This document shows, piece after piece, positions 4,949-52,637 of a stretch of 64,000 nucleotides of DNA; position 1 is the first letter of the stretch; the number at the start of each line of letters is the position of its first letter. The notes beneath the pieces were generated by a model, which did not search any database, was not told the origin of the DNA, and was given only the letters and a program-made list of their open reading frames with translations. The position numbers were made by a program, and so were the translations under genes. The stretch is taken from the sequence record MT135026.1; one strand, 5' to 3'.

Positions 4949-5497
4949 TTAAGCGTCAGTGTCACCGCGCAATGAGATTGTTGCAGTTTCTGCCGCTGCC
5001 GCTGCACCCGGACTGATTGTACGACGAACCCAAACGGCGCGTTGTTCACCTGCTTGTAGATTACCGATGTCTAGACCTGATGCAAAATCAGAATGTTCAC
5101 CGAATACTACCGCAGACAATTCATTACCTGAGTCAACTTCATCATCTAGCAAGATCAGCGAGTCAACGCCATTGCCTGCTACAGGGTCCAGGCCGATTTC
5201 GATTGTTGAATCTGGCGATGCTGTATTTGCAAAGATGAATACTTTCGCATCATACAGTGTCAATGTAGCGTGTGTGTTCTGTACGTAAATCAAACGATAC
5301 TCAACACGTCCTGATGCTGCTTCCGCTGACGGCACAGCATCAAAAAGACCGTGCAATTCACCAGACACTAATTCAGTAGCACTAATACCGCCACCAAGTG
5401 AATCAATTTCTAGATCATGCGTATTGCCGTTACCCGGTCCCGCTGCAACTACGTGCAGACTTTTCTTAAATTTCAAATCACCTGTTACGATAGGCAT
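4949..5497 (-). CDS. Conserved phage protein, probable virion accessory (182 aa)
   Basis: SLGGGISAT...LFDAVPSAEAASGRVEYRLIYVQN; late-promoter-like TCTAAATA upstream (5532-5539); sits between gp15 and gp16. Confidence 0.8.
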   Translation of the reverse strand: MPIVTGDLKFKKSLHVVAAGPGNGNTHDLEIDSLGGGISATELVSGELHGLFDAVPSAEAASGRVEYRLIYVQNTHATLTLYDAKVFIFANTASPDSTIEIGLDPVAGNGVDSLILLDDEVDSGNELSAVVFGEHSDFASGLDIGNLQAGEQRAVWVRRTISPGAAAAAETATISLRGDTDA

Positions 5498-5551: not shown

Positions 5552-6904
5552 TTAGTTTTCAATGTTGTACGTCACGTCAGTGAAGTTCCAAGCAAGTTCA
5601 CCCGGTAGGTAGTACATTTCGTAGCTGCTTGTTACTTGTGAAGACATGTTGTAGTTAATATCAGTAGATGCCGATAGTTCAGAACGTGTTGACCAATCTA
5701 TGTCATTGACCGATGTTACGACTGCGCGAGTCGACCAATCTATGTCTGACACTGCTTCAACATATTGAGAACGATTCCAATCAACATCTAAGCTACTTTC
5801 AGCAATTGCACCCTCTGACCACTGAATGTCGGTGTTGAGTTCAACAAACCCACGTGTATCCCAGTTGATTGCCAGTTCATTAGAAGCAATAGGTGATACG
5901 CCCCAAGGCGATTCGTACGTGCTTTCAATGATCTGACGGTTGTACCAGTCAACATCGTAGTCTCGACCGACGACATCACGAATATTCCAATCAACCAATA
6001 GCTCAGAACTCGCGCTTGAACGTGTTGACCAATCAATTTGCAATGCATCTGTGATGCTGAATCGACGATTCCAGTCAATTTCAAGATCGCTGACAATATC
6101 GCCACGTGTATTCCATACAAGACCGTATAGACTATCAACGCTATGACGCCACCCGAACGTATTAAGTGCTTCAACCTCTGAGCGAACTTTCCAAAGAATG
6201 TCGTAAGAGCTTGTAACTGCTTCGCGCTCTGCGTGAATGATCGTTTGTTCTTCATCTTGAAAGTTTAGGTAAATCGTTCTGATTTCACCAAACTGTGCGT
6301 TTGTAGGCGGATATAGCCAACCTTTCATTCGCAAGTTAAGCGTCCATTCGATGTGTCTCATATCACCAGCCGCACCCTCGAACGTTGTCTCAGGAACAGC
6401 CGATTCTAAGATGATCGGAATATCACGCTGGTCTACCACAACTTCATTTTCATCAAGCTCTTTGATCATTGTATTGAACTGAGGTTGAAAATATGGTAGT
6501 ATTTGTTCTATAATCTGAAATGCATCATCCTGATGTCGCGTATAAACGCTCACTTCAAATTCGAAGTCGTAAGGGACAGGGTTAAACAACTTGTTCGACT
6601 TAGGTCGGTCTCCCGTAAAGTCACGTGTCAGCTTACGATTTGCAATGTTTGTCTTTCGAGTAGCGTCATACGTACACGAAACCATGTCCAAGCCAATTCT
6701 TGGTAGCAGCGTAGCTACATTTGCCACGCTACCGTCGCCGTTAAGCTCTTGACTGTTCAAAGATGCAACAAAGTGCTCCTTTGATGAAACTGTAATTGGC
6801 ACCTTTCTATACCCGTCTCCGCGAGACACGTATATGTTAGAGAACAAGTTTCCCATCAAGAGAACGTATTTTCGTATCGATCTGTGATAGAAATACCCTT
6901 TCAC
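5552..6904 (-). CDS. 15: Tail sheath stabilizer/terminator gp15 with a long Trp-repeat C-terminal extension
   Basis: YFYHRSIRKYVLLMGNLFSNI, VPYDFEFEVSVYTRHQDDAFQIIEQILPYFQP; about 210 aa of 14-residue repeats at the C-terminus. Confidence 0.95.
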   Translation of the reverse strand: MKGYFYHRSIRKYVLLMGNLFSNIYVSRGDGYRKVPITVSSKEHFVASLNSQELNGDGSVANVATLLPRIGLDMVSCTYDATRKTNIANRKLTRDFTGDRPKSNKLFNPVPYDFEFEVSVYTRHQDDAFQIIEQILPYFQPQFNTMIKELDENEVVVDQRDIPIILESAVPETTFEGAAGDMRHIEWTLNLRMKGWLYPPTNAQFGEIRTIYLNFQDEEQTIIHAEREAVTSSYDILWKVRSEVEALNTFGWRHSVDSLYGLVWNTRGDIVSDLEIDWNRRFSITDALQIDWSTRSSASSELLVDWNIRDVVGRDYDVDWYNRQIIESTYESPWGVSPIASNELAINWDTRGFVELNTDIQWSEGAIAESSLDVDWNRSQYVEAVSDIDWSTRAVVTSVNDIDWSTRSELSASTDINYNMSSQVTSSYEMYYLPGELAWNFTDVTYNIEN

Positions 6905-37343: not shown

Positions 37344-37610
37344 ATGTCACAACAAACTCCAGAACAAGTAATCGAACAGAAAGACGCGCAAATCAAAGAT
37401 CTGAAAGTTCGTACATTTGACTTGCAAGAAGCACTTCAAGCTGAACGCAATTCATTTGGTCAATTCGTTGGTGTACTAGCTCAACTGCTAGACTTCGATC
37501 AAGAAAAAGCAAGTTCTCTACAGAACTATGTTGATGAAGTCGCTTATCTAACCGGTAAAGCTGAACGCCCTGTAGAAGGCGACGGCGAAAAAGAGAAAGA
37601 AGCTGAATAA
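37344..37610 (+). CDS. 57A: Tail fibre chaperone gp57A
   Basis: 88 aa acidic coiled coil (LKVRTFDLQE) between gene 1 and 57B. Confidence 0.8.
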   Translation: MSQQTPEQVIEQKDAQIKDLKVRTFDLQEALQAERNSFGQFVGVLAQLLDFDQEKASSLQNYVDEVAYLTGKAERPVEGDGEKEKEAE

Positions 37611-38065
37611 TGAAACTATCTAAGTTCCTTGAGAGTCAGGGAACTTACGTTGGTATCAAATTAGACGAAGCAAGTAAGCAAGAGCTAGTTCGCTTGCAAA
37701 AAACGCTTCGTCTAAAAAATCCGTTAGATCCAGATAAATTCCACGTGACTGTGCTTTATAGTCGTAAGCAAATTGATGTGCCCGTTGTAGATACCACTTT
37801 CGTTGCCACTGTTGAACAAGTTGACTGTTGGAAAACGCAAGACGGTAAACACGCGGTCGTTGCTAAGATGTCATGTCCTGCTCTTGTAGAACGTCACGAA
37901 GACCTTATCTCTATCGGTGGTACTCACGATTACCCTGACTATACTCCGCACGTCACATTGTCTTATGACGACGTAATCACCCCTATGTTCATCAATACAG
38001 AGGTTCGGCTTGTCGATGAATATATCGAACCATTAGATCTAGAATGGGTTGCTAATAATGACTGA
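37610..38065 (+). CDS. 57B: gp57B, 2H phosphoesterase (Acb1 anti-CBASS family)
   Basis: Two HxT motifs (FHVTVLYS, PHVTLSY); GTYVGIK N-terminus; synteny 1-57A-57B. Confidence 0.92.
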   Translation: MKLSKFLESQGTYVGIKLDEASKQELVRLQKTLRLKNPLDPDKFHVTVLYSRKQIDVPVVDTTFVATVEQVDCWKTQDGKHAVVAKMSCPALVERHEDLISIGGTHDYPDYTPHVTLSYDDVITPMFINTEVRLVDEYIEPLDLEWVANND

Positions 38066-38328: not shown

Positions 38329-38449
38329 TTGACTTCATCTGAAAAGGATGTAGAATGTATTTCATCGAGTCGAGAGACAGAAAACAAACTTTCAACTCGA
38401 TGAAATATTTGAAAAAAGATGTTGACTTTCGCTGAGAAGCTGATAAGAT
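38329..38449 (+). promoter_or_regulatory. Two tandem sigma70 promoters heading the RNA cluster
   Basis: TTGACT-16-TAGAAT (38329) and TTGACT-16-TAAGAT with extended TG (38422). Confidence 0.75.
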
Positions 38450-38457
38450 TAACACAG

Positions 38458-38562
38458 TTGATTAAGCGAGCTAAGTTCATCGTTCTCGCCTCTTCTTGAA
38501 GATGAACAACATTGATTAAACAGACTAGACTCATCGTTTCTGTCTCTTCTCTGAAGATGAGT
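38458..38562 (+). repeat. Two tandem ~54-nt units, each an H-type pseudoknot
   Basis: TTGATTAA leader; S1 GCGAG/CTCGC vs ACAGA/TCTGT, S2 GTTCATC/GATGAAC vs ACTCATC/GATGAGT; loops conserved. Confidence 0.8.
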
Positions 38563-38563
38563 A

Positions 38564-38715
38564 ATATTTTAAATGTGCGTTAGCCGAAATGAATACATAG
38601 AGCCAGTATAAGTTCTGGCATGCAGAGAATAGTCTTAGCGGACGATGTCTCAAACAAAAACTAGCTGAGTTAAAATTCGCTCAGTCGGCGTGCAAGTAGC
38701 GCACATTTAAAATAT
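38564..38715 (+). ncRNA. ~140-nt structured RNA
   Basis: 16-bp perfect terminal stem; inner GCCGA/TCGGC, GCCAG/CTGGC, CTGAG/CTCAG. Confidence 0.65.
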
Positions 38716-38730
38716 CGAGAGTATATTGGT

Positions 38731-38853
38731 CGAGTGTTGGTGTAGTGGCAGCACACGTAGCATACTGTAATCAGACATGATTATATTCAGCAACCAATTT
38801 ACGCATATCATAGGGAGATCGTGGGAACGGTTCGATTCCGTTACACTCGACCA
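38731..38853 (+). ncRNA. Interrupted tRNA-Pro(AGG)-like gene; 49-nt insert (38758-38806) between positions 28 and 29
   Basis: Removing the insert gives CG|ATC-ATAGGGA-GATCG; acceptor CGAGTGT/ACACTCG, A73, CCA, T arm AACGG-TTCGATT-CCGTT. Confidence 0.8.
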
Positions 38854-39120
38854 ATGTACTCTCACTTATTAAGCGAGGTGAGCAATTTGATTGTATATCT
38901 TCTCGCACTGGTATTCATAGTCCTCTTTGCCTTGGACATTGAAGAAGAAACGGTGCGTAGCTGTTCTACGCTAATCACATGCGAACGGGTCATTCATCCC
39001 GTAATTAAAGCGCACGATTCCAGATTGTGTTGTGATTAGCTAAGGCAAATATAAACTAGAGGATTTTGTGCTTGCGTAGTGAAGAATCGATCTGCGTAAG
39101 CACGCCCAAGAACATATTGA

Positions 39121-39243
39121 GCAGGGTTGGTGTAGTGGCTAGCACACGTAGCATAAACGCAAACTGTTAAGTTTGTATTCTGCAATCAATTCGCATATCA
39201 TTTCAAGATCGTGACGCAGGTTCGAATCCTGCACCCTGCTCAA
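39121..39243 (+). ncRNA. Interrupted tRNA-Glu(TTC)-like gene; 48-nt insert (39149-39196) at 28/29
   Basis: CG|ATC-ATTTCAA-GATCG; acceptor GCAGGGT/ACCCTGC; no encoded CCA. Confidence 0.8.
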
Positions 39244-39255
39244 TATGTTTTTATG

Positions 39256-39368
39256 GTGAAGTTAGTTCAGTTGGTTAGAATGCCGGCCTAAACAATAGAA
39301 GTCTGTTAAGATTTCATGCTGCATTTTATGCACGCCGGAGGTCGCAGGTTCGAGTCCTGTACTTCACC
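39256..39368 (+). ncRNA. Interrupted tRNA-like gene (Asp-type body, loop reconstitutes as CT-TGC-AC); 39-nt insert in the anticodon loop
   Basis: CCGGC-CT|insert 39290-39328|TGCAC-GCCGG; T arm GCAGG-TTCGAGT-CCTGT; junction ambiguous; no CCA. Confidence 0.75.
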
Positions 39369-39378
39369 CTCAAATTCT

Positions 39379-39502
39379 GGAGAGTTAGCTCAGTCTGGTA
39401 GAGCAAAAGAATGTTAAAGAATACTGACAAGCATTCATGCTGCAAACCTTAATAACTAGGTAAATCTTTTGGTCGGTGGTTCAAATCCATCACTCTCCAC
39501 CA
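39379..39502 (+). ncRNA. Interrupted tRNA-Tyr(GTA)/Asn-like gene; 47-nt insert in the anticodon loop
   Basis: AAAGA-AT|insert 39413-39459|GTAAA-TCTTT; acceptor GGAGAGT/ACTCTCC, CCA. Confidence 0.78.
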
Positions 39503-39516
39503 ATTTTCGAGGTTTT

Positions 39517-39885
39517 ATGAATAAGTTTGATGACATAAATGACGAACTTGATTGTATCTTGCATCGCTGTGAGATTGTAAAACGCAATCTTCGAAAATAT
39601 TGTACATTTGCTGTTGAAATGCAGTACAGACTTATGATAAACTTCATCGGTATGGGTTGCTATCAACAAGTACTCCCTATATTAGATAATCTAAATCATC
39701 ACCCTGATACTAGTCAGCTTGATAACATTGAGATTATGCAATCAGTAAAAGAACTGATGAAATGCGCGGGTAAGCTAGATGTTCTACATCAACAAGACGC
39801 TTTTCATCAAATGAAATCGACTGCTTTGATTGTAGAAGAAGCAAACATCTTCGCTGCTAAAGTTGGTAGATTTCTAGAGAAATAA
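39517..39885 (+). CDS. Hypothetical protein in tRNA cluster
   Basis: GAGG SD, ATG 39517, fills the gap between two tRNA-like genes. Confidence 0.75.
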   Translation: MNKFDDINDELDCILHRCEIVKRNLRKYCTFAVEMQYRLMINFIGMGCYQQVLPILDNLNHHPDTSQLDNIEIMQSVKELMKCAGKLDVLHQQDAFHQMKSTALIVEEANIFAAKVGRFLEK

Positions 39886-39886
39886 T

Positions 39887-39964
39887 GGCCCTATAGCTCA
39901 ACTAGGTTAGAGCAACCGACTCATAATCGGTAGGTTACAGGTTCGAGCCCTGTTGGGGTCACCA
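39887..39964 (+). tRNA. tRNA-Ile2/Met (CAT)
   Basis: Cloverleaf, ACCGA-CTCATAA-TCGGT, GGCCC acceptor like Ile2, encoded CCA. Confidence 0.92.
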
Positions 39965-39983
39965 AATTAAATTGAAAAAGTTG

Positions 39984-40012
39984 TTGACAGGCGTTTCGTC
40001 AACGTGTAGTAT
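39984..40012 (+). promoter_or_regulatory. sigma70 promoter
   Basis: TTGACA-17-TAGTAT. Confidence 0.8.
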
Positions 40013-40042
40013 ACACATTATCAACTACACGAGGAAAACATT

Positions 40043-40273
40043 ATGTCACATAAATTGCTAGTTATCACTTCGATGCATGGTTACTCTGTTGATTCTGATT
40101 TCAGAACTGCAATGTTTAACAAATACATGTGTGATGTTGTGATTCCGGATGACGCTGTTGTTTTGTACTCAGGTACAGTTTCAATAGATGAAATTCAAGC
40201 AATTGCGAATGAATGTTACGCTGACATCAATATTGAAGAAGTTGATGATGATGTATTTGACAGCTATCTTTAA
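40043..40273 (+). CDS. Hypothetical acidic protein
   Basis: GAGG SD, downstream of a sigma70 promoter. Confidence 0.75.
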   Translation: MSHKLLVITSMHGYSVDSDFRTAMFNKYMCDVVIPDDAVVLYSGTVSIDEIQAIANECYADINIEEVDDDVFDSYL

Positions 40274-40280
40274 ATAAAAT

Positions 40281-40520
40281 GCCGCTAACTGGTGTACAAT
40301 ACGCAGTGTTTTCCCAACATTAGTGCAGACATAGGTTCGCAACCTGTGTTGGTACCGAATCACTGGGACCGAGTAGAAAGTGCGTGTGAGTTGTCGAAAG
40401 CTCACACGTAGAAATAACGCTCGAATGCTCCGAAATGCTGATTAGCTCTTACTTCGAAACTCTAATTGGGTGGACGAGGTGTTGTGTTTGACGTGTGTTC
40501 GATTCACACGAGCGGCGCCA
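40281..40520 (+). ncRNA. 240-nt RNA with tRNA-like ends (tmRNA-shaped)
   Basis: GCCGCT/AGCGGC acceptor, G73-CCA, GAC + GTGTG-TTCGATT-CACAC T arm, exit helix ACAATAC/GTGTTGT. Confidence 0.7.
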
Positions 40521-40533
40521 AGAGGAAATTATA

Positions 40534-41055
40534 ATGAAACCATTGAAATTCGCACAAGCGTTTTCGAAAGAAGAACGCGCTGCAATGTCTCCTGAAGTAC
40601 GCAATAAACTGCGTGCTGAGTATAACGCTCGTTACCAAGAGTACATTGACAAGCACGTTAACGTGTACGTACGAAAAGATTTTCGACGTGAGCGTTGTTG
40701 GGTTATTCTTGCTAGATGTAAGAAGACTGGTAAAATTGTCGGTGAGATTGAAAACAGCTTCAGTATGGGCTGGTCTAAGGAGCGAGTGCGTGTTATTCGA
40801 CCGTACCTCGGGCGTGTCTTTGCAAGCAATGAACGCTTCTCTAAAGCTGATTACAACAAAGCTTGTGCAGAGTATATCGCTAACTACGATAAGCGCGTAA
40901 AGGAGCTTAGAGAGCGTTACAGCGAGACTCACGATGTCTTTATCGCTCGTGTGGGGAGTAAGAACTGTCCTATTGCTATTGATTGGGGCACGTTCTATAG
41001 CACAAAGAACAAACGAAACTTTGACTGGCGTAATTTGAAGTTCAAAGTTAAATAA
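40534..41055 (+). CDS. Hypothetical basic protein
   Basis: GAGG SD, ATG 40534 just after the 240-nt RNA. Confidence 0.75.
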   Translation: MKPLKFAQAFSKEERAAMSPEVRNKLRAEYNARYQEYIDKHVNVYVRKDFRRERCWVILARCKKTGKIVGEIENSFSMGWSKERVRVIRPYLGRVFASNERFSKADYNKACAEYIANYDKRVKELRERYSETHDVFIARVGSKNCPIAIDWGTFYSTKNKRNFDWRNLKFKVK

Positions 41056-41060
41056 TTCAT

Positions 41061-41176
41061 AGTCGGGTAGCTCAGTGGTAGAGCACGAAGAATGATACTG
41101 ACAAGTATCGCTCCAGCACTCCTTCAATTGCCTGTTAAGCACGTGGTCGCTGGTTCGAATCCAGCCCCGACTACCA
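41061..41176 (+). ncRNA. Interrupted tRNA-Asn(GTT)-like gene; 41-nt insert (41088-41128) at 28/29
   Basis: CG|TGC-CTGTTAA-GCACG is a perfect arm once the insert is removed; acceptor AGTCGGG/CCCGACT, CCA. Confidence 0.82.
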
Positions 41177-41201
41177 ATTTTAATAACAAGTGAGGTACAA
41201 C

Positions 41202-41435
41202 ATGAGTTTTGACATCAATAAAACTTTACTGACTCCGAAACAACTGCATAATCTAACGGACGAACGTCTGAACGAATATCGCAAGTCGTTTCGCAAACCT
41301 CTTGGGTTCTTGAAGCATCTGAATGACACTAACGAGTTGACTTCAGATCAACACAAGAAGTATGTTGAACTGAACCGCCATTACAACGATGAAATTCTCG
41401 TTGAAATGAACAAGCGAAAACACCTAGGTCGATAA
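41202..41435 (+). CDS. Hypothetical protein
   Basis: GAGGT SD, ATG 41202. Confidence 0.7.
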   Translation: MSFDINKTLLTPKQLHNLTDERLNEYRKSFRKPLGFLKHLNDTNELTSDQHKKYVELNRHYNDEILVEMNKRKHLGR

Positions 41436-42907: not shown

Positions 42908-42912
42908 GTTTT

Positions 42913-43000
42913 AGCTTGCATACTGCAATTTAACTTACTCTATTGATCGCTCGACGAACTCAGTTCAGACAGCGATAAACAGACCAAAGAACGCAAGCTG
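42913..43000 (+). ncRNA. CWGCAA-motif RNA (88 nt)
   Basis: AGCTTGC-ATA-CTGCAA ... GCAAGCT-G. Confidence 0.7.
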
Positions 43001-43009
43001 TTGAATAAT

Positions 43010-43623: not shown

Positions 43624-43683
43624 AAGCAATCTTTCAGCAAACAATACAAAACTTTTATTTGGAAAAAGAGAAAAGGATTGCTG
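43624..43683 (+). ncRNA. CWGCAA-motif RNA (60 nt) with an anticodon-like hairpin
   Basis: AGCAATCT-TT-CAGCAA ... CTTTT-ATTTGGA-AAAAG ... GGATTGCT-G. Confidence 0.7.
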
Positions 43684-44242: not shown

Positions 44243-44250
44243 AATACCGA

Positions 44251-44367
44251 AGAGTGTTTTCAGCAAACAATTTACTAATATTCTTCTGATGAAAAGAAAT
44301 GTTTGGGGTTCGATTCCCTTTCAGTGTTGGTATCACTGGTCTGGACGACGCAAGTAATAACACTCAG
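44251..44367 (+). ncRNA. CWGCAA-motif RNA with anticodon-like and T-arm-like hairpins
   Basis: GAGTGTT/AACACTC stem; TTCTT-CTGATGAA-AAGAA; GGG-TTCGATT-CCC. Confidence 0.72.
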
Positions 44368-44371
44368 TAAC

Positions 44372-44689: not shown

Positions 44690-44764
44690 GGGCCGTTAGC
44701 TTAATTGGGAAAGCGCCTCACTTGCAATGAGGAAGATAGGGTTCGACTCCCTGCGTGTCCACCA
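44690..44764 (+). tRNA. tRNA-Ala (TGC)
   Basis: CCTCA-CTTGCAA-TGAGG, G3:U70, imperfect acceptor stem, CCA. Confidence 0.85.
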
Positions 44765-44978: not shown

Positions 44979-45193
44979 AGACAATATACAGCAACAAATT
45001 AAAATCTTACTAAAAATGGTAATGATCTTAACCTGGGCAGTGCTTCGGTGCAGCTTGAAAGGAAAGATTCTCTCTGCCTAGAAATAGTCAGATAGGCGCG
45101 TCGCTGAAACAGACGATATTTGCTTGTTGAGAAGCAACAAGATAGTCAACTCCGATTCATGTTAAAGACGAAAAAACACTTCGGTATTGTCTG
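44979..45193 (+). ncRNA. CWGCAA-motif RNA (215 nt)
   Basis: AGACAATA/TATTGTCT stem; shares internal blocks with 47221-47467. Confidence 0.75.
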
Positions 45194-46680: not shown

Positions 46681-46902
46681 AATTCACTTAGCAACGCGAA
46701 TCGAAAGAGAGTGAATAGACCGTACGACACTATGGTCTTAAAAGAAGATATAGCTGAAAGGCTATGTGTAGACCTGCTAAGAGTCCCGCTGGTCGTTAAA
46801 TTATCAAAAGGGATCTGCGAAGCGCGTGGCACACGCCAGCAATAAGAGCAAATATGTGTCTGAGCATGAGAGCAGCATGCCACTGTTTAAAAGTCGTTCA
46901 GT

Positions 46903-49182: not shown

Positions 49183-49539
49183 ATGTACGTTATGATTGAT
49201 GATCTGCGTGATATTAATAAGTTCACGTCAGATTACGTACGTGATGATGAAAAACTCGTACTTCGAACATTCGAAGACGGTATGAATTTCGTCAAGCACA
49301 CAAATCTAACTGACATCACGCTATTCATGGATAACGATCTAGGTGATGATGTTGGTAGAGAGGGATACGATATTCTCTCTCATGCGATTGATCATCGTAA
49401 TTTTCCGCGCACTGTTGTTCTAGTGACAAGCAATCCTGTTGGTCATAGTAAAATGGCTCTGTTGCTTTCTCACTCTGGTCAGTATAAGCGCGTTGGTTCA
49501 ATTTTTATGAGGTACGATACATGTCGCACGTCAATGTAA
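49183..49539 (+). CDS. Cyclic-phosphate processing receiver-domain-like protein
   Basis: MIDDLR, RTFEDG, FMDNDLG, EGYDIL, VTSNPVG match the stand-alone phage REC pattern (LDDxR...DHDLG...GYD...HSANPVG). Confidence 0.7.
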   Translation: MYVMIDDLRDINKFTSDYVRDDEKLVLRTFEDGMNFVKHTNLTDITLFMDNDLGDDVGREGYDILSHAIDHRNFPRTVVLVTSNPVGHSKMALLLSHSGQYKRVGSIFMRYDTCRTSM

Positions 49540-50589: not shown

Positions 50590-50632
50590 CGACATTTTAC
50601 AGCAATTTAATATGAGGAATAAACAATGTCAG
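50590..50632 (+). promoter_or_regulatory. CWGCAA-motif hairpin sequestering the start codon of the TROVE-like gene
   Basis: GACATT-TTA-CAGCAA ... GAGGA ... AATGTC-AG; ATG 50626 lies in the 3' strand. Confidence 0.75.
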
Positions 50633-52062
50633 CATTTATGAACGCTATGCAATCAAACGATTCACGTACAGCAAACGGTGCAGTTACTCACAGCACTTCA
50701 GGTAACGAGTGTCTAAACTTGTTCTTCGGTATTGCTGCTATGCGTGGTAACGATCAGTCTAAAACACTGTTCGGTCGTGCGTTTGCAGAAAACCCCGAAC
50801 TAGCGACACGCATTCTTTTATGGTCTCGTGATGTTCGCGGTGGTGCGGGTGAACGTGGTACTTTCCGTACTCTATTCACTAAACTTTGTAATGAGCAGCC
50901 TGACGTAGCTCGTGCTGTAATGTCGAAAATTCCAGAACTAGGTCGTTTCGACGACTTGATTTCTGCGTTCGGTACAAGTCTTGAGAAAGACGCGATCACA
51001 TTGTGGTCAAACGCGATTGTAAACGACAAGAACGCTCTTGCTGCTAAGTGGTTCCCACGTGAAAACAGCAAAAACGGTCATGTGTTCAAGCGCACAATCA
51101 AGTCTCTTGGTGTAACTGCGAAGCAGTGGCGTAAGATTCTAGCACTTTTGTCTGACACTGTTGAACAGAAGATGTGTGCGCAAGAATGGGATGCAATCGA
51201 CTTTGGTAAGTTGCCATCTGTAGCGTCTGCTCGTTATCAACAAGCATTCGGTCGTAACGCTTCTGCTCGTTACACAAGCTACATCGAGTCACTTCAAAAA
51301 GGTGAAGCGAAGATCAACGCTGGTGCATTGTTCCCATATGATGTCGTTAAGAGCGTTAGTCATGGTAATGCGTCTGTAGCGAACGAGCAATGGAAAGCCC
51401 TGCCGAACTACATGGAAGGCTCTGATGAGCGCATCATCCCAGTTGTTGACGTGTCTGGCTCTATGAGCACGCCGATCAACGCAGGTACAGATCGTTCAGG
51501 TGTGACTTGTAAGCAAGTTGCAATGTCTCTTGGCATCTATGTTGCTGAACGCAATGAAGGCATCTTCAAAGATCAGTTCATTTCGTTCTCAAGCGATCCG
51601 CACTTCCACCAGTTACGCGGTAGCTCACTAAAAGAGCGTCTTGACAACATGAATCGCTCAGGTGAAGACATGAGCACAAACATCGGTAAATGCTTTAACG
51701 TTCTGTTAGAGCGTGCGAAACGTGCAAATCTTTCACAAGAAGAAATGCCAACCAAGTTGCTTATCATGAGCGACATGGAATTCGACCAAGCAAACACTGG
51801 TGGCGGCTGGTATGGTCGCGGCGAACGTGCAAACTTCGACGCAATCAAAGCTATGTACGCACGTGCTGGCTATGAAATGCCACAACTAGTCTTCTGGAAC
51901 ATTCGTGGTCGTCTTGGCAACGTTCCGGTTAAAGCTGGCGAAGCGGGTACTGCACTGGTATCGGGTTGTAGCCCATCTATCCTGACTTCATTGTTGGGTG
52001 GTGAGCTTGAGCCAGTCAAGATCATGCTGAAAACTGTAGGCGTTGATCGCTACAGCTTTTAA
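50626..52062 (+). CDS. DUF2828-type TROVE/Ro60-like helical domain + vWA protein
   Basis: RDVRGGAGER, ALAAKWFPRE, KINAGALFPYDVV, MIDAS DVSGS, STN, SDMEFD, VFWNIR; architecture parallels Ro60/Rsr. Confidence 0.8.
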   Translation: MSAFMNAMQSNDSRTANGAVTHSTSGNECLNLFFGIAAMRGNDQSKTLFGRAFAENPELATRILLWSRDVRGGAGERGTFRTLFTKLCNEQPDVARAVMSKIPELGRFDDLISAFGTSLEKDAITLWSNAIVNDKNALAAKWFPRENSKNGHVFKRTIKSLGVTAKQWRKILALLSDTVEQKMCAQEWDAIDFGKLPSVASARYQQAFGRNASARYTSYIESLQKGEAKINAGALFPYDVVKSVSHGNASVANEQWKALPNYMEGSDERIIPVVDVSGSMSTPINAGTDRSGVTCKQVAMSLGIYVAERNEGIFKDQFISFSSDPHFHQLRGSSLKERLDNMNRSGEDMSTNIGKCFNVLLERAKRANLSQEEMPTKLLIMSDMEFDQANTGGGWYGRGERANFDAIKAMYARAGYEMPQLVFWNIRGRLGNVPVKAGEAGTALVSGCSPSILTSLLGGELEPVKIMLKTVGVDRYSF

Positions 52063-52098: not shown

Positions 52099-52112
52099 GT
52101 ACAGAGGTGAAA

Positions 52113-52637
52113 ATGTTCGATTGGGAAGCAATTGAAACAGCTATCAATAACAGTCATCCGAACAGTACGATTTATGTTGGGTGTGATAGCAAGCGTAAGA
52201 GTGATATGATTAGTTACGCTACTGTAATCATCATTCACCTTGAGGGTAGTAAAGGCGCTCAAGTATTCAAATCTATCGAAACTGAACCAGCGTACATGTC
52301 TTGTAAAGATGGTATTCGTAGTCGTTTGATGAATGAAGTCTATAAAGCAGGTGAAACCGCCCTGCGTGTTAAGCCAATGTGTGGTACTCGTGGGTTTGAA
52401 GTTCACGTTGACATCAACCCAGACCCATCCCATCGTTCACACGTTGCGTATAACGAAGCTAAGGGCACTATCTTGGGATACGTGGGTCAAGAACCCGTTT
52501 TCAAGCCTGATGCGTTTGCTGCGTCGTGTGCTGCGGATTATGATGCAGTTAGACGTGCAGACAAAATCGCAAAACGCAAAGAGTTGCGTAGAGCAAAAAG
52601 AAAAGCAAATAAGGCAAATCGTAAAGGGCGCAAATAG
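52113..52637 (+). CDS. RNase H-like protein (YkuK/DUF458 type)
   Basis: IYVGCDS, YATVIIIH, RLMNEV, EVHVDIN, KPDAFAASCAAD; ATG 52113 behind GAGGTG. Confidence 0.8.
   Translation: MFDWEAIETAINNSHPNSTIYVGCDSKRKSDMISYATVIIIHLEGSKGAQVFKSIETEPAYMSCKDGIRSRLMNEVYKAGETALRVKPMCGTRGFEVHVDINPDPSHRSHVAYNEAKGTILGYVGQEPVFKPDAFAASCAADYDAVRRADKIAKRKELRRAKRKANKANRKGRK

Follow-up and report, generated by a model that had tools for sequence, protein, structure and literature searches.

The window analysed here, a stretch of 64,000 nucleotides (nt) from sequence record MT135026.1, carries between positions 38731 and 41176 five tRNA-like genes, termed G1 to G5 in the following, whose anticodon arms are interrupted by inserts of 39-49 nt. 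We propose, with a probability of about two in three, that these genes encode stable, tRNA-shaped non-coding RNAs of the Y RNA type (YrlA-like), which carry in the insert a handle for a Ro-like protein. The handle, a short hairpin followed by a conserved C-N-G-C-A motif, is also found on RNAs encoded beside genes of Ro60-like proteins, and G1-G5 are thus probably Y-RNA-type partners of such a protein and neither introns nor dead genes. As evidence, we set out below how the RNAs are built and conserved, their homology to RNAs that score as YrlA, the association of the handle with one protein family, and the Ro60 fold predicted for the protein encoded by the phage itself. The segment from 38500 to 41400 is 100% identical to Vibrio phage V09 (MT135026), a KVP40-like phage of the T4 type. 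Identity amounts to 93.7-97% with KVP40 and phi-pp2, 88-89% with the ValKK3/R11Z group, about 85% with nt-1 and VS2, and about 78% with the K566 group. It forms the head of a large tRNA cluster, in which ARAGORN detects 27 tRNAs between 39887 and 47209. The five genes and their handles are:

38731-38853, plus strand: G1, with a tRNA-Pro-like body (C1-G72, A73) and an encoded CCA; insert at 38758-38806 (49 nt)
38767-38784, plus strand: handle of G1, hairpin GTAATC/AGACAT/GATTAT, then ATT-CAGCAA
39121-39242, plus strand: G2, a paralogue of G1; insert at 39149-39196 (48 nt)
39159-39176, plus strand: handle of G2, hairpin GCAAAC/TGTTAA/GTTTGT, then ATT-CTGCAA
39256-39368, plus strand: G3, with a tRNA-like body (54.6 bits with the Rfam tRNA model); insert at 39290-39328 (39 nt)
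39298-39315, plus strand: handle of G3, hairpin GAAGTC/TGTTAA/GATTTC, then ATG-CTGCAT
39379-39502, plus strand: G4, with a tRNA-like body (Rfam tRNA 55.5 bits) and an encoded CCA; insert at 39417-39463 (47 nt)
39419-39436, plus strand: handle of G4, hairpin GAATAC/TGACAA/GCATTC, then ATG-CTGCAA
41061-41176, plus strand: G5, with a tRNA-like body (Rfam tRNA 49.8 bits) and an encoded CCA; insert at 41088-41128 (41 nt)
41093-41110, plus strand: handle of G5, hairpin TGATAC/TGACAA/GTATCG, then CTC-CAGCAC

An earlier, sequence-only reading of this DNA had placed five genes with split anticodon arms here, and we recover all five at the same positions, all on the plus strand. ARAGORN in its default mode calls none of them, while the Rfam tRNA model matches G3, G4 and G5 from end to end with 50-55 bits, skipping 44-54 nt in the anticodon arm, and gives no match on G1 or G2. 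The acceptor stem, D arm and T arm can be folded in all five genes, and the CCA end is encoded in three. In agreement with the sequence-only reading, the anticodon arm is split at 28/29 in three genes (G1, G2, G5) and within the loop in two (G3, G4). Hereby, the 5-bp (base pair) anticodon stem of G3 is intact (CCGGC/GCCGG) and closes a 46-nt loop that contains the handle; the anticodon stem of G4 (AAAGA/TCTTT) is intact as well, and its cut can be placed equally well at 37/38. When the inserts are deleted, ARAGORN draws all five as canonical cloverleaves, in which a 7-nt loop is closed by an anticodon stem of 5 bp (6 bp in the drawing of G5), namely Pro(AGG), Glu(TTC), Ala(TGC), Asn(GTT) and Asn(GTT). 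This bears out the restored arms that had been claimed before, with the third and fourth genes called as Ala(TGC) and Asn(GTT). Intact tRNAs for the same amino acids are present elsewhere in the cluster, as had also been stated. Alanine is covered by a tRNA-Ala(TGC) at 44690-44761 (plus strand) with G3:U70, which is found by the Rfam tRNA model only (44.9 bits) and missed by ARAGORN.

One module recurs in exact register in all five inserts and in their orthologues: an A-rich lead-in is followed by a 6-bp stem with its 6-nt loop and return strand, then by 3 nt and C-N-G-C-A. The loop is mostly UGNNAA, and the motif usually reads CAGCAA or CTGCAA. From G1 to G5 it is CAGCAA, CTGCAA, CTGCAT, CTGCAA and CAGCAC; the hairpin with CWGCAA that the sequence-only reading saw in every insert therefore holds as CWGCA in 5/5, while the ends in G3 and G5 are off consensus. 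A raw count on both strands of the 64-kilobase (kb) window gives four instances of the perfect form (6 bp, 6-nt loop, 3 nt, CNGCA), all of them within these genes. Among 21 distinct copies the handle hairpin is 95% paired, with compensatory changes at 5/6 pairs, compared to 28-43% in controls in which the partner strand was slid. The G1 handle, for instance, reads GTAATC/GATTAT in V09 and GCTTAC/GTAAGT in K566; in the G4 hairpin, where 5/6 positions pair, the A-C mismatch becomes A-T in K566. A Rfam scan of 38650-41250 with E values up to 10 reveals no intron, ribozyme or other RNA family in the inserts beyond tRNA. Two looser motifs were discarded: CTGWYAAG, with 14 matches across the window where 8.7 are expected, is uninformative alone, and ATTCWGCAA with one mismatch (64 against 44.5 expected) matches mostly coding noise.

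The RNAs are under selection as whole units and are not decaying. G1, insert included, is 100% identical in KVP40, R11Z, ST2, PVA8 and PVA23, where the flanks are 88-95% identical, and BLAST finds G5 100% identical in six other Schizotequatrovirus loci, including KVP40, R11Z and PVA8. In G1, G4 and G5 the insert is conserved as much as the body in most phages, and the inserts of G2 and G3 lie 5-21 percentage points lower. An alignment of 12 sequences of the G1/G2 family shows complete pairing of the cloverleaf (100% of cells), against 21-50% of cells when the partner is slid by 1-3 columns, and changes on both sides are seen at 6/7 acceptor pairs and 4/5 T-stem pairs. The D stem and the split anticodon stem (CG...ATC/GATCG) are invariant in these 12 sequences and thus uninformative on pairing either way. 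A tRNA-like domain with D and T arms and an acceptor-like stem is hence evident in all five genes, for G3-G5 from the Rfam scores and for G1 and G2 from the fully paired cloverleaf. Within G2, the distal anticodon-like loop is variable, with 7 nt and TTC in V09, 7 nt and TCT in K566, and 8 nt in KVP40 (ATTCATAA) and R11Z (ATTTCCAA), and the 3-bp stem that flanks it is invariant. The restored anticodon of the G1 family is AGG, TAG, TGG or CGG. The G2 orthologues compared lie at:

L001 2119-2243: G2 orthologue
L003 1613-1736: G2 orthologue
L007 8607-8729: G2 orthologue

These data bear directly on the label under which the genes have been filed so far. In the prior KVP40 record three of the five appear as tRNA-Pseudo-3, -4 and -5, two genome papers term them 'pseudo-forms' (PMC3468402, PMC5107563), and in the phi-pp2 record all five are present, under the labels tRNA-OTHER, Phe, Asn and Val. 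The Val call, like an Ile call in ST2, arose because the software took the hairpin loop of the insert for the anticodon, and the Phe and Asn calls because the anticodon was read at the 5' edge of the enlarged loop. Decaying tRNA pseudogenes, broken by a small mobile or repeat element, would be dispensable for decoding given the intact isoacceptors, and G3 is indeed absent from some relatives (ST2, VS2 and K566). However, 100% conservation of G1 and G5 between flanks of 88-95% is not what neutral evolution predicts, the handle, acceptor and T stems show compensatory changes, and the genes have been retained in Schizotequatrovirus, Mylasvirus and the K566 group. Likewise, terminal inverted repeats are absent. 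The sequence-only reading had pointed out that the inserts of G1 and G2 share TAGCATA...GCAT ends. The short GCATA direct repeat that flanks these two inserts is missing from G3-G5 and belongs to a block that is conserved in permuted homologues (see below), so that we rejected it as a target-site duplication. We therefore regard decay as hardly tenable, and the unconserved random decay that the sequence-only reading had named as its refuting case is not what the related phages display.

Homologues outside this phage group connect the tRNA-like body to a protein family. We scanned IMG/VR with the conserved block of G1 and G2, GCATATCAT-N(3-7)-AGATCGTG, and obtained two true homologues, which lie in unrelated viral contigs (L011 and L015). 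The first has normal tRNA topology; a sigma-70-like promoter precedes it, and 75 nt separate it from the downstream gene for a protein with DUF2828 and von Willebrand factor A (vWA) domains. The second is circularly permuted: it starts 27 nt past the stop codon of a DUF2828-vWA gene and runs from GGATC (a strand of the handle stem) through ATTACAGCAAC, the 3' half of the body, a loop-closed acceptor and the 5' half to GATCC. Pairing of its ends together with a closed acceptor corresponds to the topology of the bacterial YrlA Y RNAs. Pattern scans of metagenome and genome contigs, in which nearly all matches were chance matches in coding DNA, yielded only L163, directly after a DUF2828 gene, and L085, on a short contig, as further true homologues. 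In L015/L017 and L163 the permuted RNA lies directly 3' of the gene, its handle stem being made by the RNA ends and its acceptor being loop-closed. The equivalent RNA of L019 matches the Rfam YrlA model over its full length with 41 bits (E 4e-8 locally), and in mycobacteriophage Lumos the RNA that follows a 'Ro-like' gene, DUF2828-type by Pfam, does so with 39 bits; these scores of 39-41 bits are below the gathering score of 69 (RF02553) but significant. The distance between RNA and DUF2828 gene is about 25-170 nt in L011, L015/L017, L019 and L163.

Altogether, at least three arrangements of the same parts can be distinguished. In the first, the handle lies within the anticodon arm (V09 G1-G5, L011, L085); in the second, it is formed by the RNA ends while the acceptor is closed (L015, L019, FelixO1 5041-5163 and 44252-44365 of the window); in the third, it takes the place of the acceptor stem on an otherwise complete tRNA-like body (L018, L015 9560-9490). 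Tandem extra handle RNAs were observed at loci of the permuted RNAs, on the minus strand of L015 at 10090-9990 and 9560-9490 and in L019 at 6189-6282; among them, one has YrlA topology and another carries the handle as acceptor along with a 7-nt anticodon-like loop. In the 150-kb contig L011 (2656-4536), a fusion of an HNH endonuclease and an RNA ligase (368 amino acids) and a HAD_SAK_2 RNA-repair phosphatase precede the RNA and the Ro-like gene.

The handle with open ends, i.e. as a terminal stem, is far more widespread. We scanned 24 IMG/VR loci with the protein, together with FelixO1, Listeria phage P100 and Lumos, for a 7-bp strand followed by 2-4 nt and C[AT]GCAA, with the strand complementary to it 30-260 nt further on. 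Hereby, 55 terminal-stem handle RNAs were listed in 19 loci (the window and 18 fetched loci). At 17 of 20 distinct DUF2828 loci, including Lumos, FelixO1 and P100, one to eight such RNAs each occur in intergenic DNA by the gene or among adjacent tRNAs. While the invariance of the six motif letters in the 55 open-ended copies is a consequence of the search pattern, the RNAs share features beyond it: a leader ending in A, a stem starting with (A)G, an A-rich stretch (53% A) before the return strand, a tail (C)UGU(U/A) and, in 23/55, a T-loop-like element. RNAalifold applied to 23 short members recovers the terminal stem unaided, with 5/6 pairs compensated. Four CAGCAA-handle RNAs lie between the tRNAs of FelixO1. 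In P100 (L043), three tandem CAGCAA-handle RNAs (2227-2491) lie directly 5' of the DUF2828 gene; a ROOL RNA (86 bits; gathering score 99) is found at 1033-1584, 0.6 kb upstream of them, and a gene for an RtcB ligase 1.3 kb downstream.

V09 itself carries such open-ended RNAs. The spacers of its tRNA cluster hold at least five, 58-246 nt long, with compensatory stem changes in nt-1, VS2 or K566:

42913-42999, plus strand: handle RNA in a spacer of the tRNA cluster, AGCTTGC-ATA-CTGCAA ... GCAAGCT-GTT, conserved in nt-1 and VS2; match of covariance model R1 at 42910-43004 (E 6e-3)
43625-43682, plus strand: short handle RNA (58 nt), AGCAATC-TTT-CAGCAA ... GATTGCT-GTT, with a compensated stem (GTAATC/GATTAC) in VS2 and K566
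44252-44365, plus strand: handle RNA of YrlA topology with a T-arm-like element (GGGGTTCGATTCCC), GAGTGTT-TT-CAGCAA ... AACACTC, with a K566 orthologue; R1 match at 44248-44371 (E 9e-4), untrained
44980-45191, plus strand: long handle RNA, GACAATA-TA-CAGCAA ... TATTGTC-TGT, with a K566 orthologue (L007 14969-15204)
47221-47466, plus strand: long handle RNA at the end of the tRNA cluster, AGACATT-GTA-CAGCAA ... AATGTCT-GTG, with a K566 orthologue (L007 17012-17207)

The covariance model R1, which was built from the short terminal-stem RNAs, almost all of them from other phages, thus finds two untrained members in the tRNA cluster of the window. It is unable to reach the two long RNAs (212 and 246 nt) or the hairpin-closed handles, and those links were made by manual comparison. 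A possible further handle RNA lies at 46826-46883. Including G1-G5, the phage seems to encode at least ten handle RNAs. The open form runs from the leader with its A through a stem strand, about 3 nt, CAGCAA, the remaining RNA, an A-rich stretch and the return strand to a UGUU tail; the closed form of G1-G5 runs from the A-rich stretch through a strand, the UGUUAA/UGACAA loop, the second strand and about 3 nt to CWGCAA. Compared in this order, the hairpin loop reads as the 3' tail (UGUU) joined to the 5' leader (A), and the hairpin base of the closed form corresponds to the inner end of the terminal stem.

The recurrence of the handle on other RNAs weighs on a second explanation, according to which G1-G5 are intron-containing pre-tRNAs that are spliced by a protein endonuclease and a phage RNA ligase, with the handle as recognition element, to give functional Pro, Glu, Ala and Asn tRNAs. 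Precise deletion of the insert does yield a canonical cloverleaf in 5/5 genes, and the halves of the split anticodon stem are invariant in the 12 aligned sequences. As in the tRNA introns of archaea and eukaryotes, the insert is short and located in or near the anticodon loop, and in G4 the cut can be placed at 37/38. RNA-repair genes, moreover, are found near handle RNAs or the protein gene: an HNH-RNA ligase and HAD_SAK in L011, RtcB in P100, and a cyclic-phosphate processing receiver (cREC) in V09. Unlike in archaeal and eukaryotic introns, however, a bulge-helix-bulge motif is not seen in the folds or by eye, the Rfam scan reveals no group I or group II core in inserts that measure only 39-49 nt, and the insert sites vary between genes (28/29, 33/34 or 37/38). 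The inserts bear instead a conserved handle of protein-binding type that is also present in the permuted and the acceptor-replacing RNAs, two of the three arrangements, and on the many short stand-alone RNAs; in all of these its excision yields no tRNA. Nor is the restored anticodon kept among orthologues, as the four versions in the G1 family and the TTC, TCT and 8-nt loops of G2 demonstrate. According to textbook identity rules, tRNA-Ala is marked by G3:U70, tRNA-Asn by G73, and tRNA-Pro by C1-G72, A73, G35, G36 and G37. Applied to the present sequences, these rules leave only G1, which retains these Pro features, looking like a chargeable tRNA-Pro, whereas G3 is devoid of G3:U70 and, in the copies of Grn1 and R11Z, of U33 in the 5' part of the loop, and G4 and G5 have A73 where the phage's own tRNA-Asn genes have G73. 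Finally, the inserts of G1, G4 and G5 match the conservation of the bodies in most phages, which is unusual for a discarded spacer. Splicing of G1-G5 is thus unlikely, and the intron explanation as a whole appears improbable to us.

The protein that we consider as partner of the V09 RNAs is encoded 3.4 kb past the end of the tRNA cluster, on the same strand:

50626-52062, plus strand: gene for a Ro60-like protein of 478 amino acids, with DUF2828 helical repeats and a DUF7788/vWA domain (Pfam PF11443, PF25043)

An AlphaFold2 model of this protein (pLDDT, the predicted local distance difference test score, of 77; predicted template-modelling score of 0.74) was compared with the PDB. Its nine best matches are phiLo Ro60 (three), Deinococcus Rsr (one) and vertebrate Ro60 alone or with RNA (five), all aligned over the full length (about 500-570 columns) with template-modelling (TM) scores of 0.47-0.58; the next matches are isolated vWA domains with E values more than 100-fold weaker. 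A search of the PDB by sequence with the V09 protein does not find Ro60, which is retrieved by the fold search only. Judged by its model, the protein has the Ro60 fold, and the genome is accordingly predicted to encode a member of the Ro60 family (TROVE ring plus vWA). The DUF2828-type family is large, with 709 phage records, among them 56 Vibrio phages, and more than 7000 database proteins at E < 1e-10, and annotators have labelled some members 'Ro-like RNA-binding protein'. Two further open reading frames on the plus strand flank the gene, one for cREC at 49183-49539, 1.1 kb upstream, and one for an RNase H-like protein (PF04308) at 52107-52637, immediately downstream; together they suggest a small RNA-end-processing neighbourhood.

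By analogy with the Rsr-YrlA-PNPase (PMC4201824) and phiLo Ro60-Yrl-PNPase (PMC12135203) complexes, the V09 protein would bind the handle, and the tRNA-like body would dock the complex to factors that recognise tRNA, such as exoribonucleases, repair enzymes or host anticodon nucleases. The acceptor, D and T arms and the CCA end are the features by which enzymes identify the elbow and the acceptor end of a tRNA. The complex might then serve RNA surveillance and quality control, repair or counter-defence during infection. Of the two options offered by the sequence-only reading, tRNA mimics with a protein-binding handle fit the evidence, the likely protein being the phage's own Ro60-like DUF2828-vWA protein, while an undescribed mini-intron is disfavoured.

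Several observations weigh against a Y-RNA-type role. The protein gene is not adjacent to G1-G5; it follows them on the same strand at a distance of 9.5-12 kb, with the tRNA cluster intervening. CWGCAA (CNGCA in the 21 hairpin copies) differs from the GNCGAA(N)G or CGAA motif of described Y RNAs, although its position, just inside the stem on the side of the 5' strand, is analogous to that of the Y-RNA contact motif, and it is itself off consensus in G3 and G5. The Rfam YrlA model gives no genuine match on G1-G5, the sole one (29.8 bits, 39340-39404) spanning G3 and G4. Instead of the paired ends that form the Ro-binding stem of YrlA, with a score above the gathering threshold, G1-G5 have tRNA topology with an internal hairpin. 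The scan for terminal stems is loose, its background being about 0.07 per kb in shuffled sequences and 0.17 per kb in the window, so that the association of handle and protein family rests on local density, the shared flanking consensus, and covariation and structure, not on the raw count. Moreover, the Ro60-like gp130 of phage Bas63 is active against the Ppl defence both on its own and when expressed from T7, an activity for which phage-encoded RNAs are therefore dispensable (bioRxiv 10.1101/2024.10.10.617714). The YrlA matches at the junctions G3/G4 and G2/G3 were set aside as artefacts of tandem tRNAs.

The mimicry itself could also be explained without any Ro-like protein. G1-G5 would then be free-standing decoys or sponges for host nucleases that target tRNA, or for other tRNA-binding defence proteins, and the handle would do no more than prevent decoding or lend the RNA stability. 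In general, clusters of tRNA genes in phages are associated with escape from tRNA-cleaving defences, the tRNA bodies are intact and mimic particular tRNA species, and the exposed anticodon-like loop of G2 changes quickly between close phages, as an arms race predicts. This proposal, however, leaves unexplained why an identical handle occurs on dozens of RNAs that are not tRNA-like and are packed against DUF2828 genes, and why the sequence of the motif and of the tail-like loop is conserved. We consider it unlikely, if worth keeping in mind; a decoy role downstream of Ro-like binding, by contrast, is compatible with the Y-RNA-type role favoured here.

A bolder extension of the Y-RNA-type reading, which we rate as quite unlikely, treats the handle RNAs as interchangeable tRNA-shaped adaptors for one Ro-like ring protein. 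Each RNA could imitate one tRNA species, and the complex could intercept or repair the damage done to those species by host anticodon nucleases; the fast-changing loop of G2 would then reflect the arms race. In a still more radical version, the UGNNAA loop could be a processing site that leads to two-piece 'split tRNAs', or the RNAs could be spliced by means of the protein and a phage RNA ligase, which, if true, would amount to protein-dependent tRNA splicing in a bacterial virus.

The DNA 5' of the cluster contains further elements. The promoter-like sites are matches to the sigma-70 consensus only:

38329-38449, plus strand: two sigma-70-like promoter matches 5' of G1, TTGACT-16-TAGAAT and TTGACT-16-TAAGAT

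Between these sites and G1, at 38440-38560 (plus strand), there are two similar tandem units of about 60 nt (...TTGATTAAGCGAGCTAAGTTCATCGTTCTCGCCTCTTCTTGAAGATGA..., ...TTGATTAAACAGACTAGACTCATCGTTTCTGTCTCTTCTCTGAAGATGA...). The gp57B homologue at 37610-38065 (plus strand), which one related record names 'RNA ligase', was considered as a splicing ligase and rejected, as it really is Acb1 (PF23474, E 2e-46), a cyclic-nucleotide phosphodiesterase directed against the cyclic-oligonucleotide-based antiphage signalling system (anti-CBASS). In the close relatives TCU-VP03-AIR1 and TCU-VP04-AIR2, a homing endonuclease gene is annotated within the stretch homologous to 38500-41400.

If the proposed reading is right, five long-standing 'pseudo-tRNA' annotations of KVP40-like phages become candidate functional RNAs with a named putative protein partner, and the partner RNAs of the very large DUF2828-type family of Ro-like proteins could be found by a simple rule, i.e. 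stem, 2-4 nt, CAGCAA. We also count Bas63 gp130, which is reported to overcome a bacterial defence system, in this family. The tRNA-topology form with its CCA end would further illustrate that one set of parts can give rise to tRNA mimicry of the Y RNA type in at least three circular arrangements. The function of the tRNA-like domain thereby becomes accessible to direct tests with phages that propagate on laboratory strains.

Neither tRNA-mimicking Y RNAs nor phage-encoded Ro60 proteins accompanied by Yrl RNAs are new. In the literature searched, we found no form with tRNA topology, a handle inside the anticodon arm and an encoded CCA, no CAGCAA handle rule for the DUF2828 branch, and no reassignment of the 'pseudo-tRNAs' of the KVP40 group. 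In both bacteria and phages, Y RNAs with tRNA mimicry have been described next to Ro60 genes (Chen et al. 2014, PMC4201824; Rfam RF02553). The V09 system resembles the pairs of YrlA and Rsr/Ro60 in joining a tRNA-like part, made up of D and T arms and an acceptor-like stem, to a helix and motif that form a (in V09, putative) site for a ring protein of the Ro60 type, in encoding RNA and protein on the same strand, and in having several paralogous RNAs per genome, and the permuted homologues of G1 and G2 score as YrlA. YrlA, however, ends in the Ro-binding stem and has a closed acceptor, whereas G1-G5 follow the normal tRNA order with free acceptor ends, an encoded CCA in three genes and a closed hairpin handle in the anticodon arm. 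Their motif is CWGCAA, 2-4 nt after the stem, instead of GNCGAA, they lie 9.5-12 kb from the protein gene, and the V09 protein is a DUF2828-type relative that is linked to Ro60 by fold comparison and not by sequence. In Bas63 (Felixounavirus), gp130 is described as structurally Ro60-like and encoded directly upstream of tRNA genes; the authors of that work surmised that Y RNAs are among the annotated tRNAs and identified no RNA (bioRxiv 10.1101/2024.10.10.617714). FelixO1, of the same genus, has this layout too, with its DUF2828-vWA protein encoded directly upstream of the tRNA cluster; its handle RNAs, unlike G1-G5, are of the terminal-stem type and not tRNA genes with an internal handle. The Ro60 protein of Thermus phage phiLo binds two phage-encoded RNAs, Yrl1 and Yrl2 (PMC12135203; PDB 9KOP, 9L5Y). 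Unlike the V09 RNAs, these are stem-bulge-stem structures with CGAA and are not described as tRNA-like in that paper, and the two proteins share about 17% sequence identity. Both phages nevertheless combine a protein of Ro60 fold, predicted in the case of V09, with phage partner RNAs (in V09, putative ones) encoded nearby, and 9KOP is the best structural match of the V09 model.

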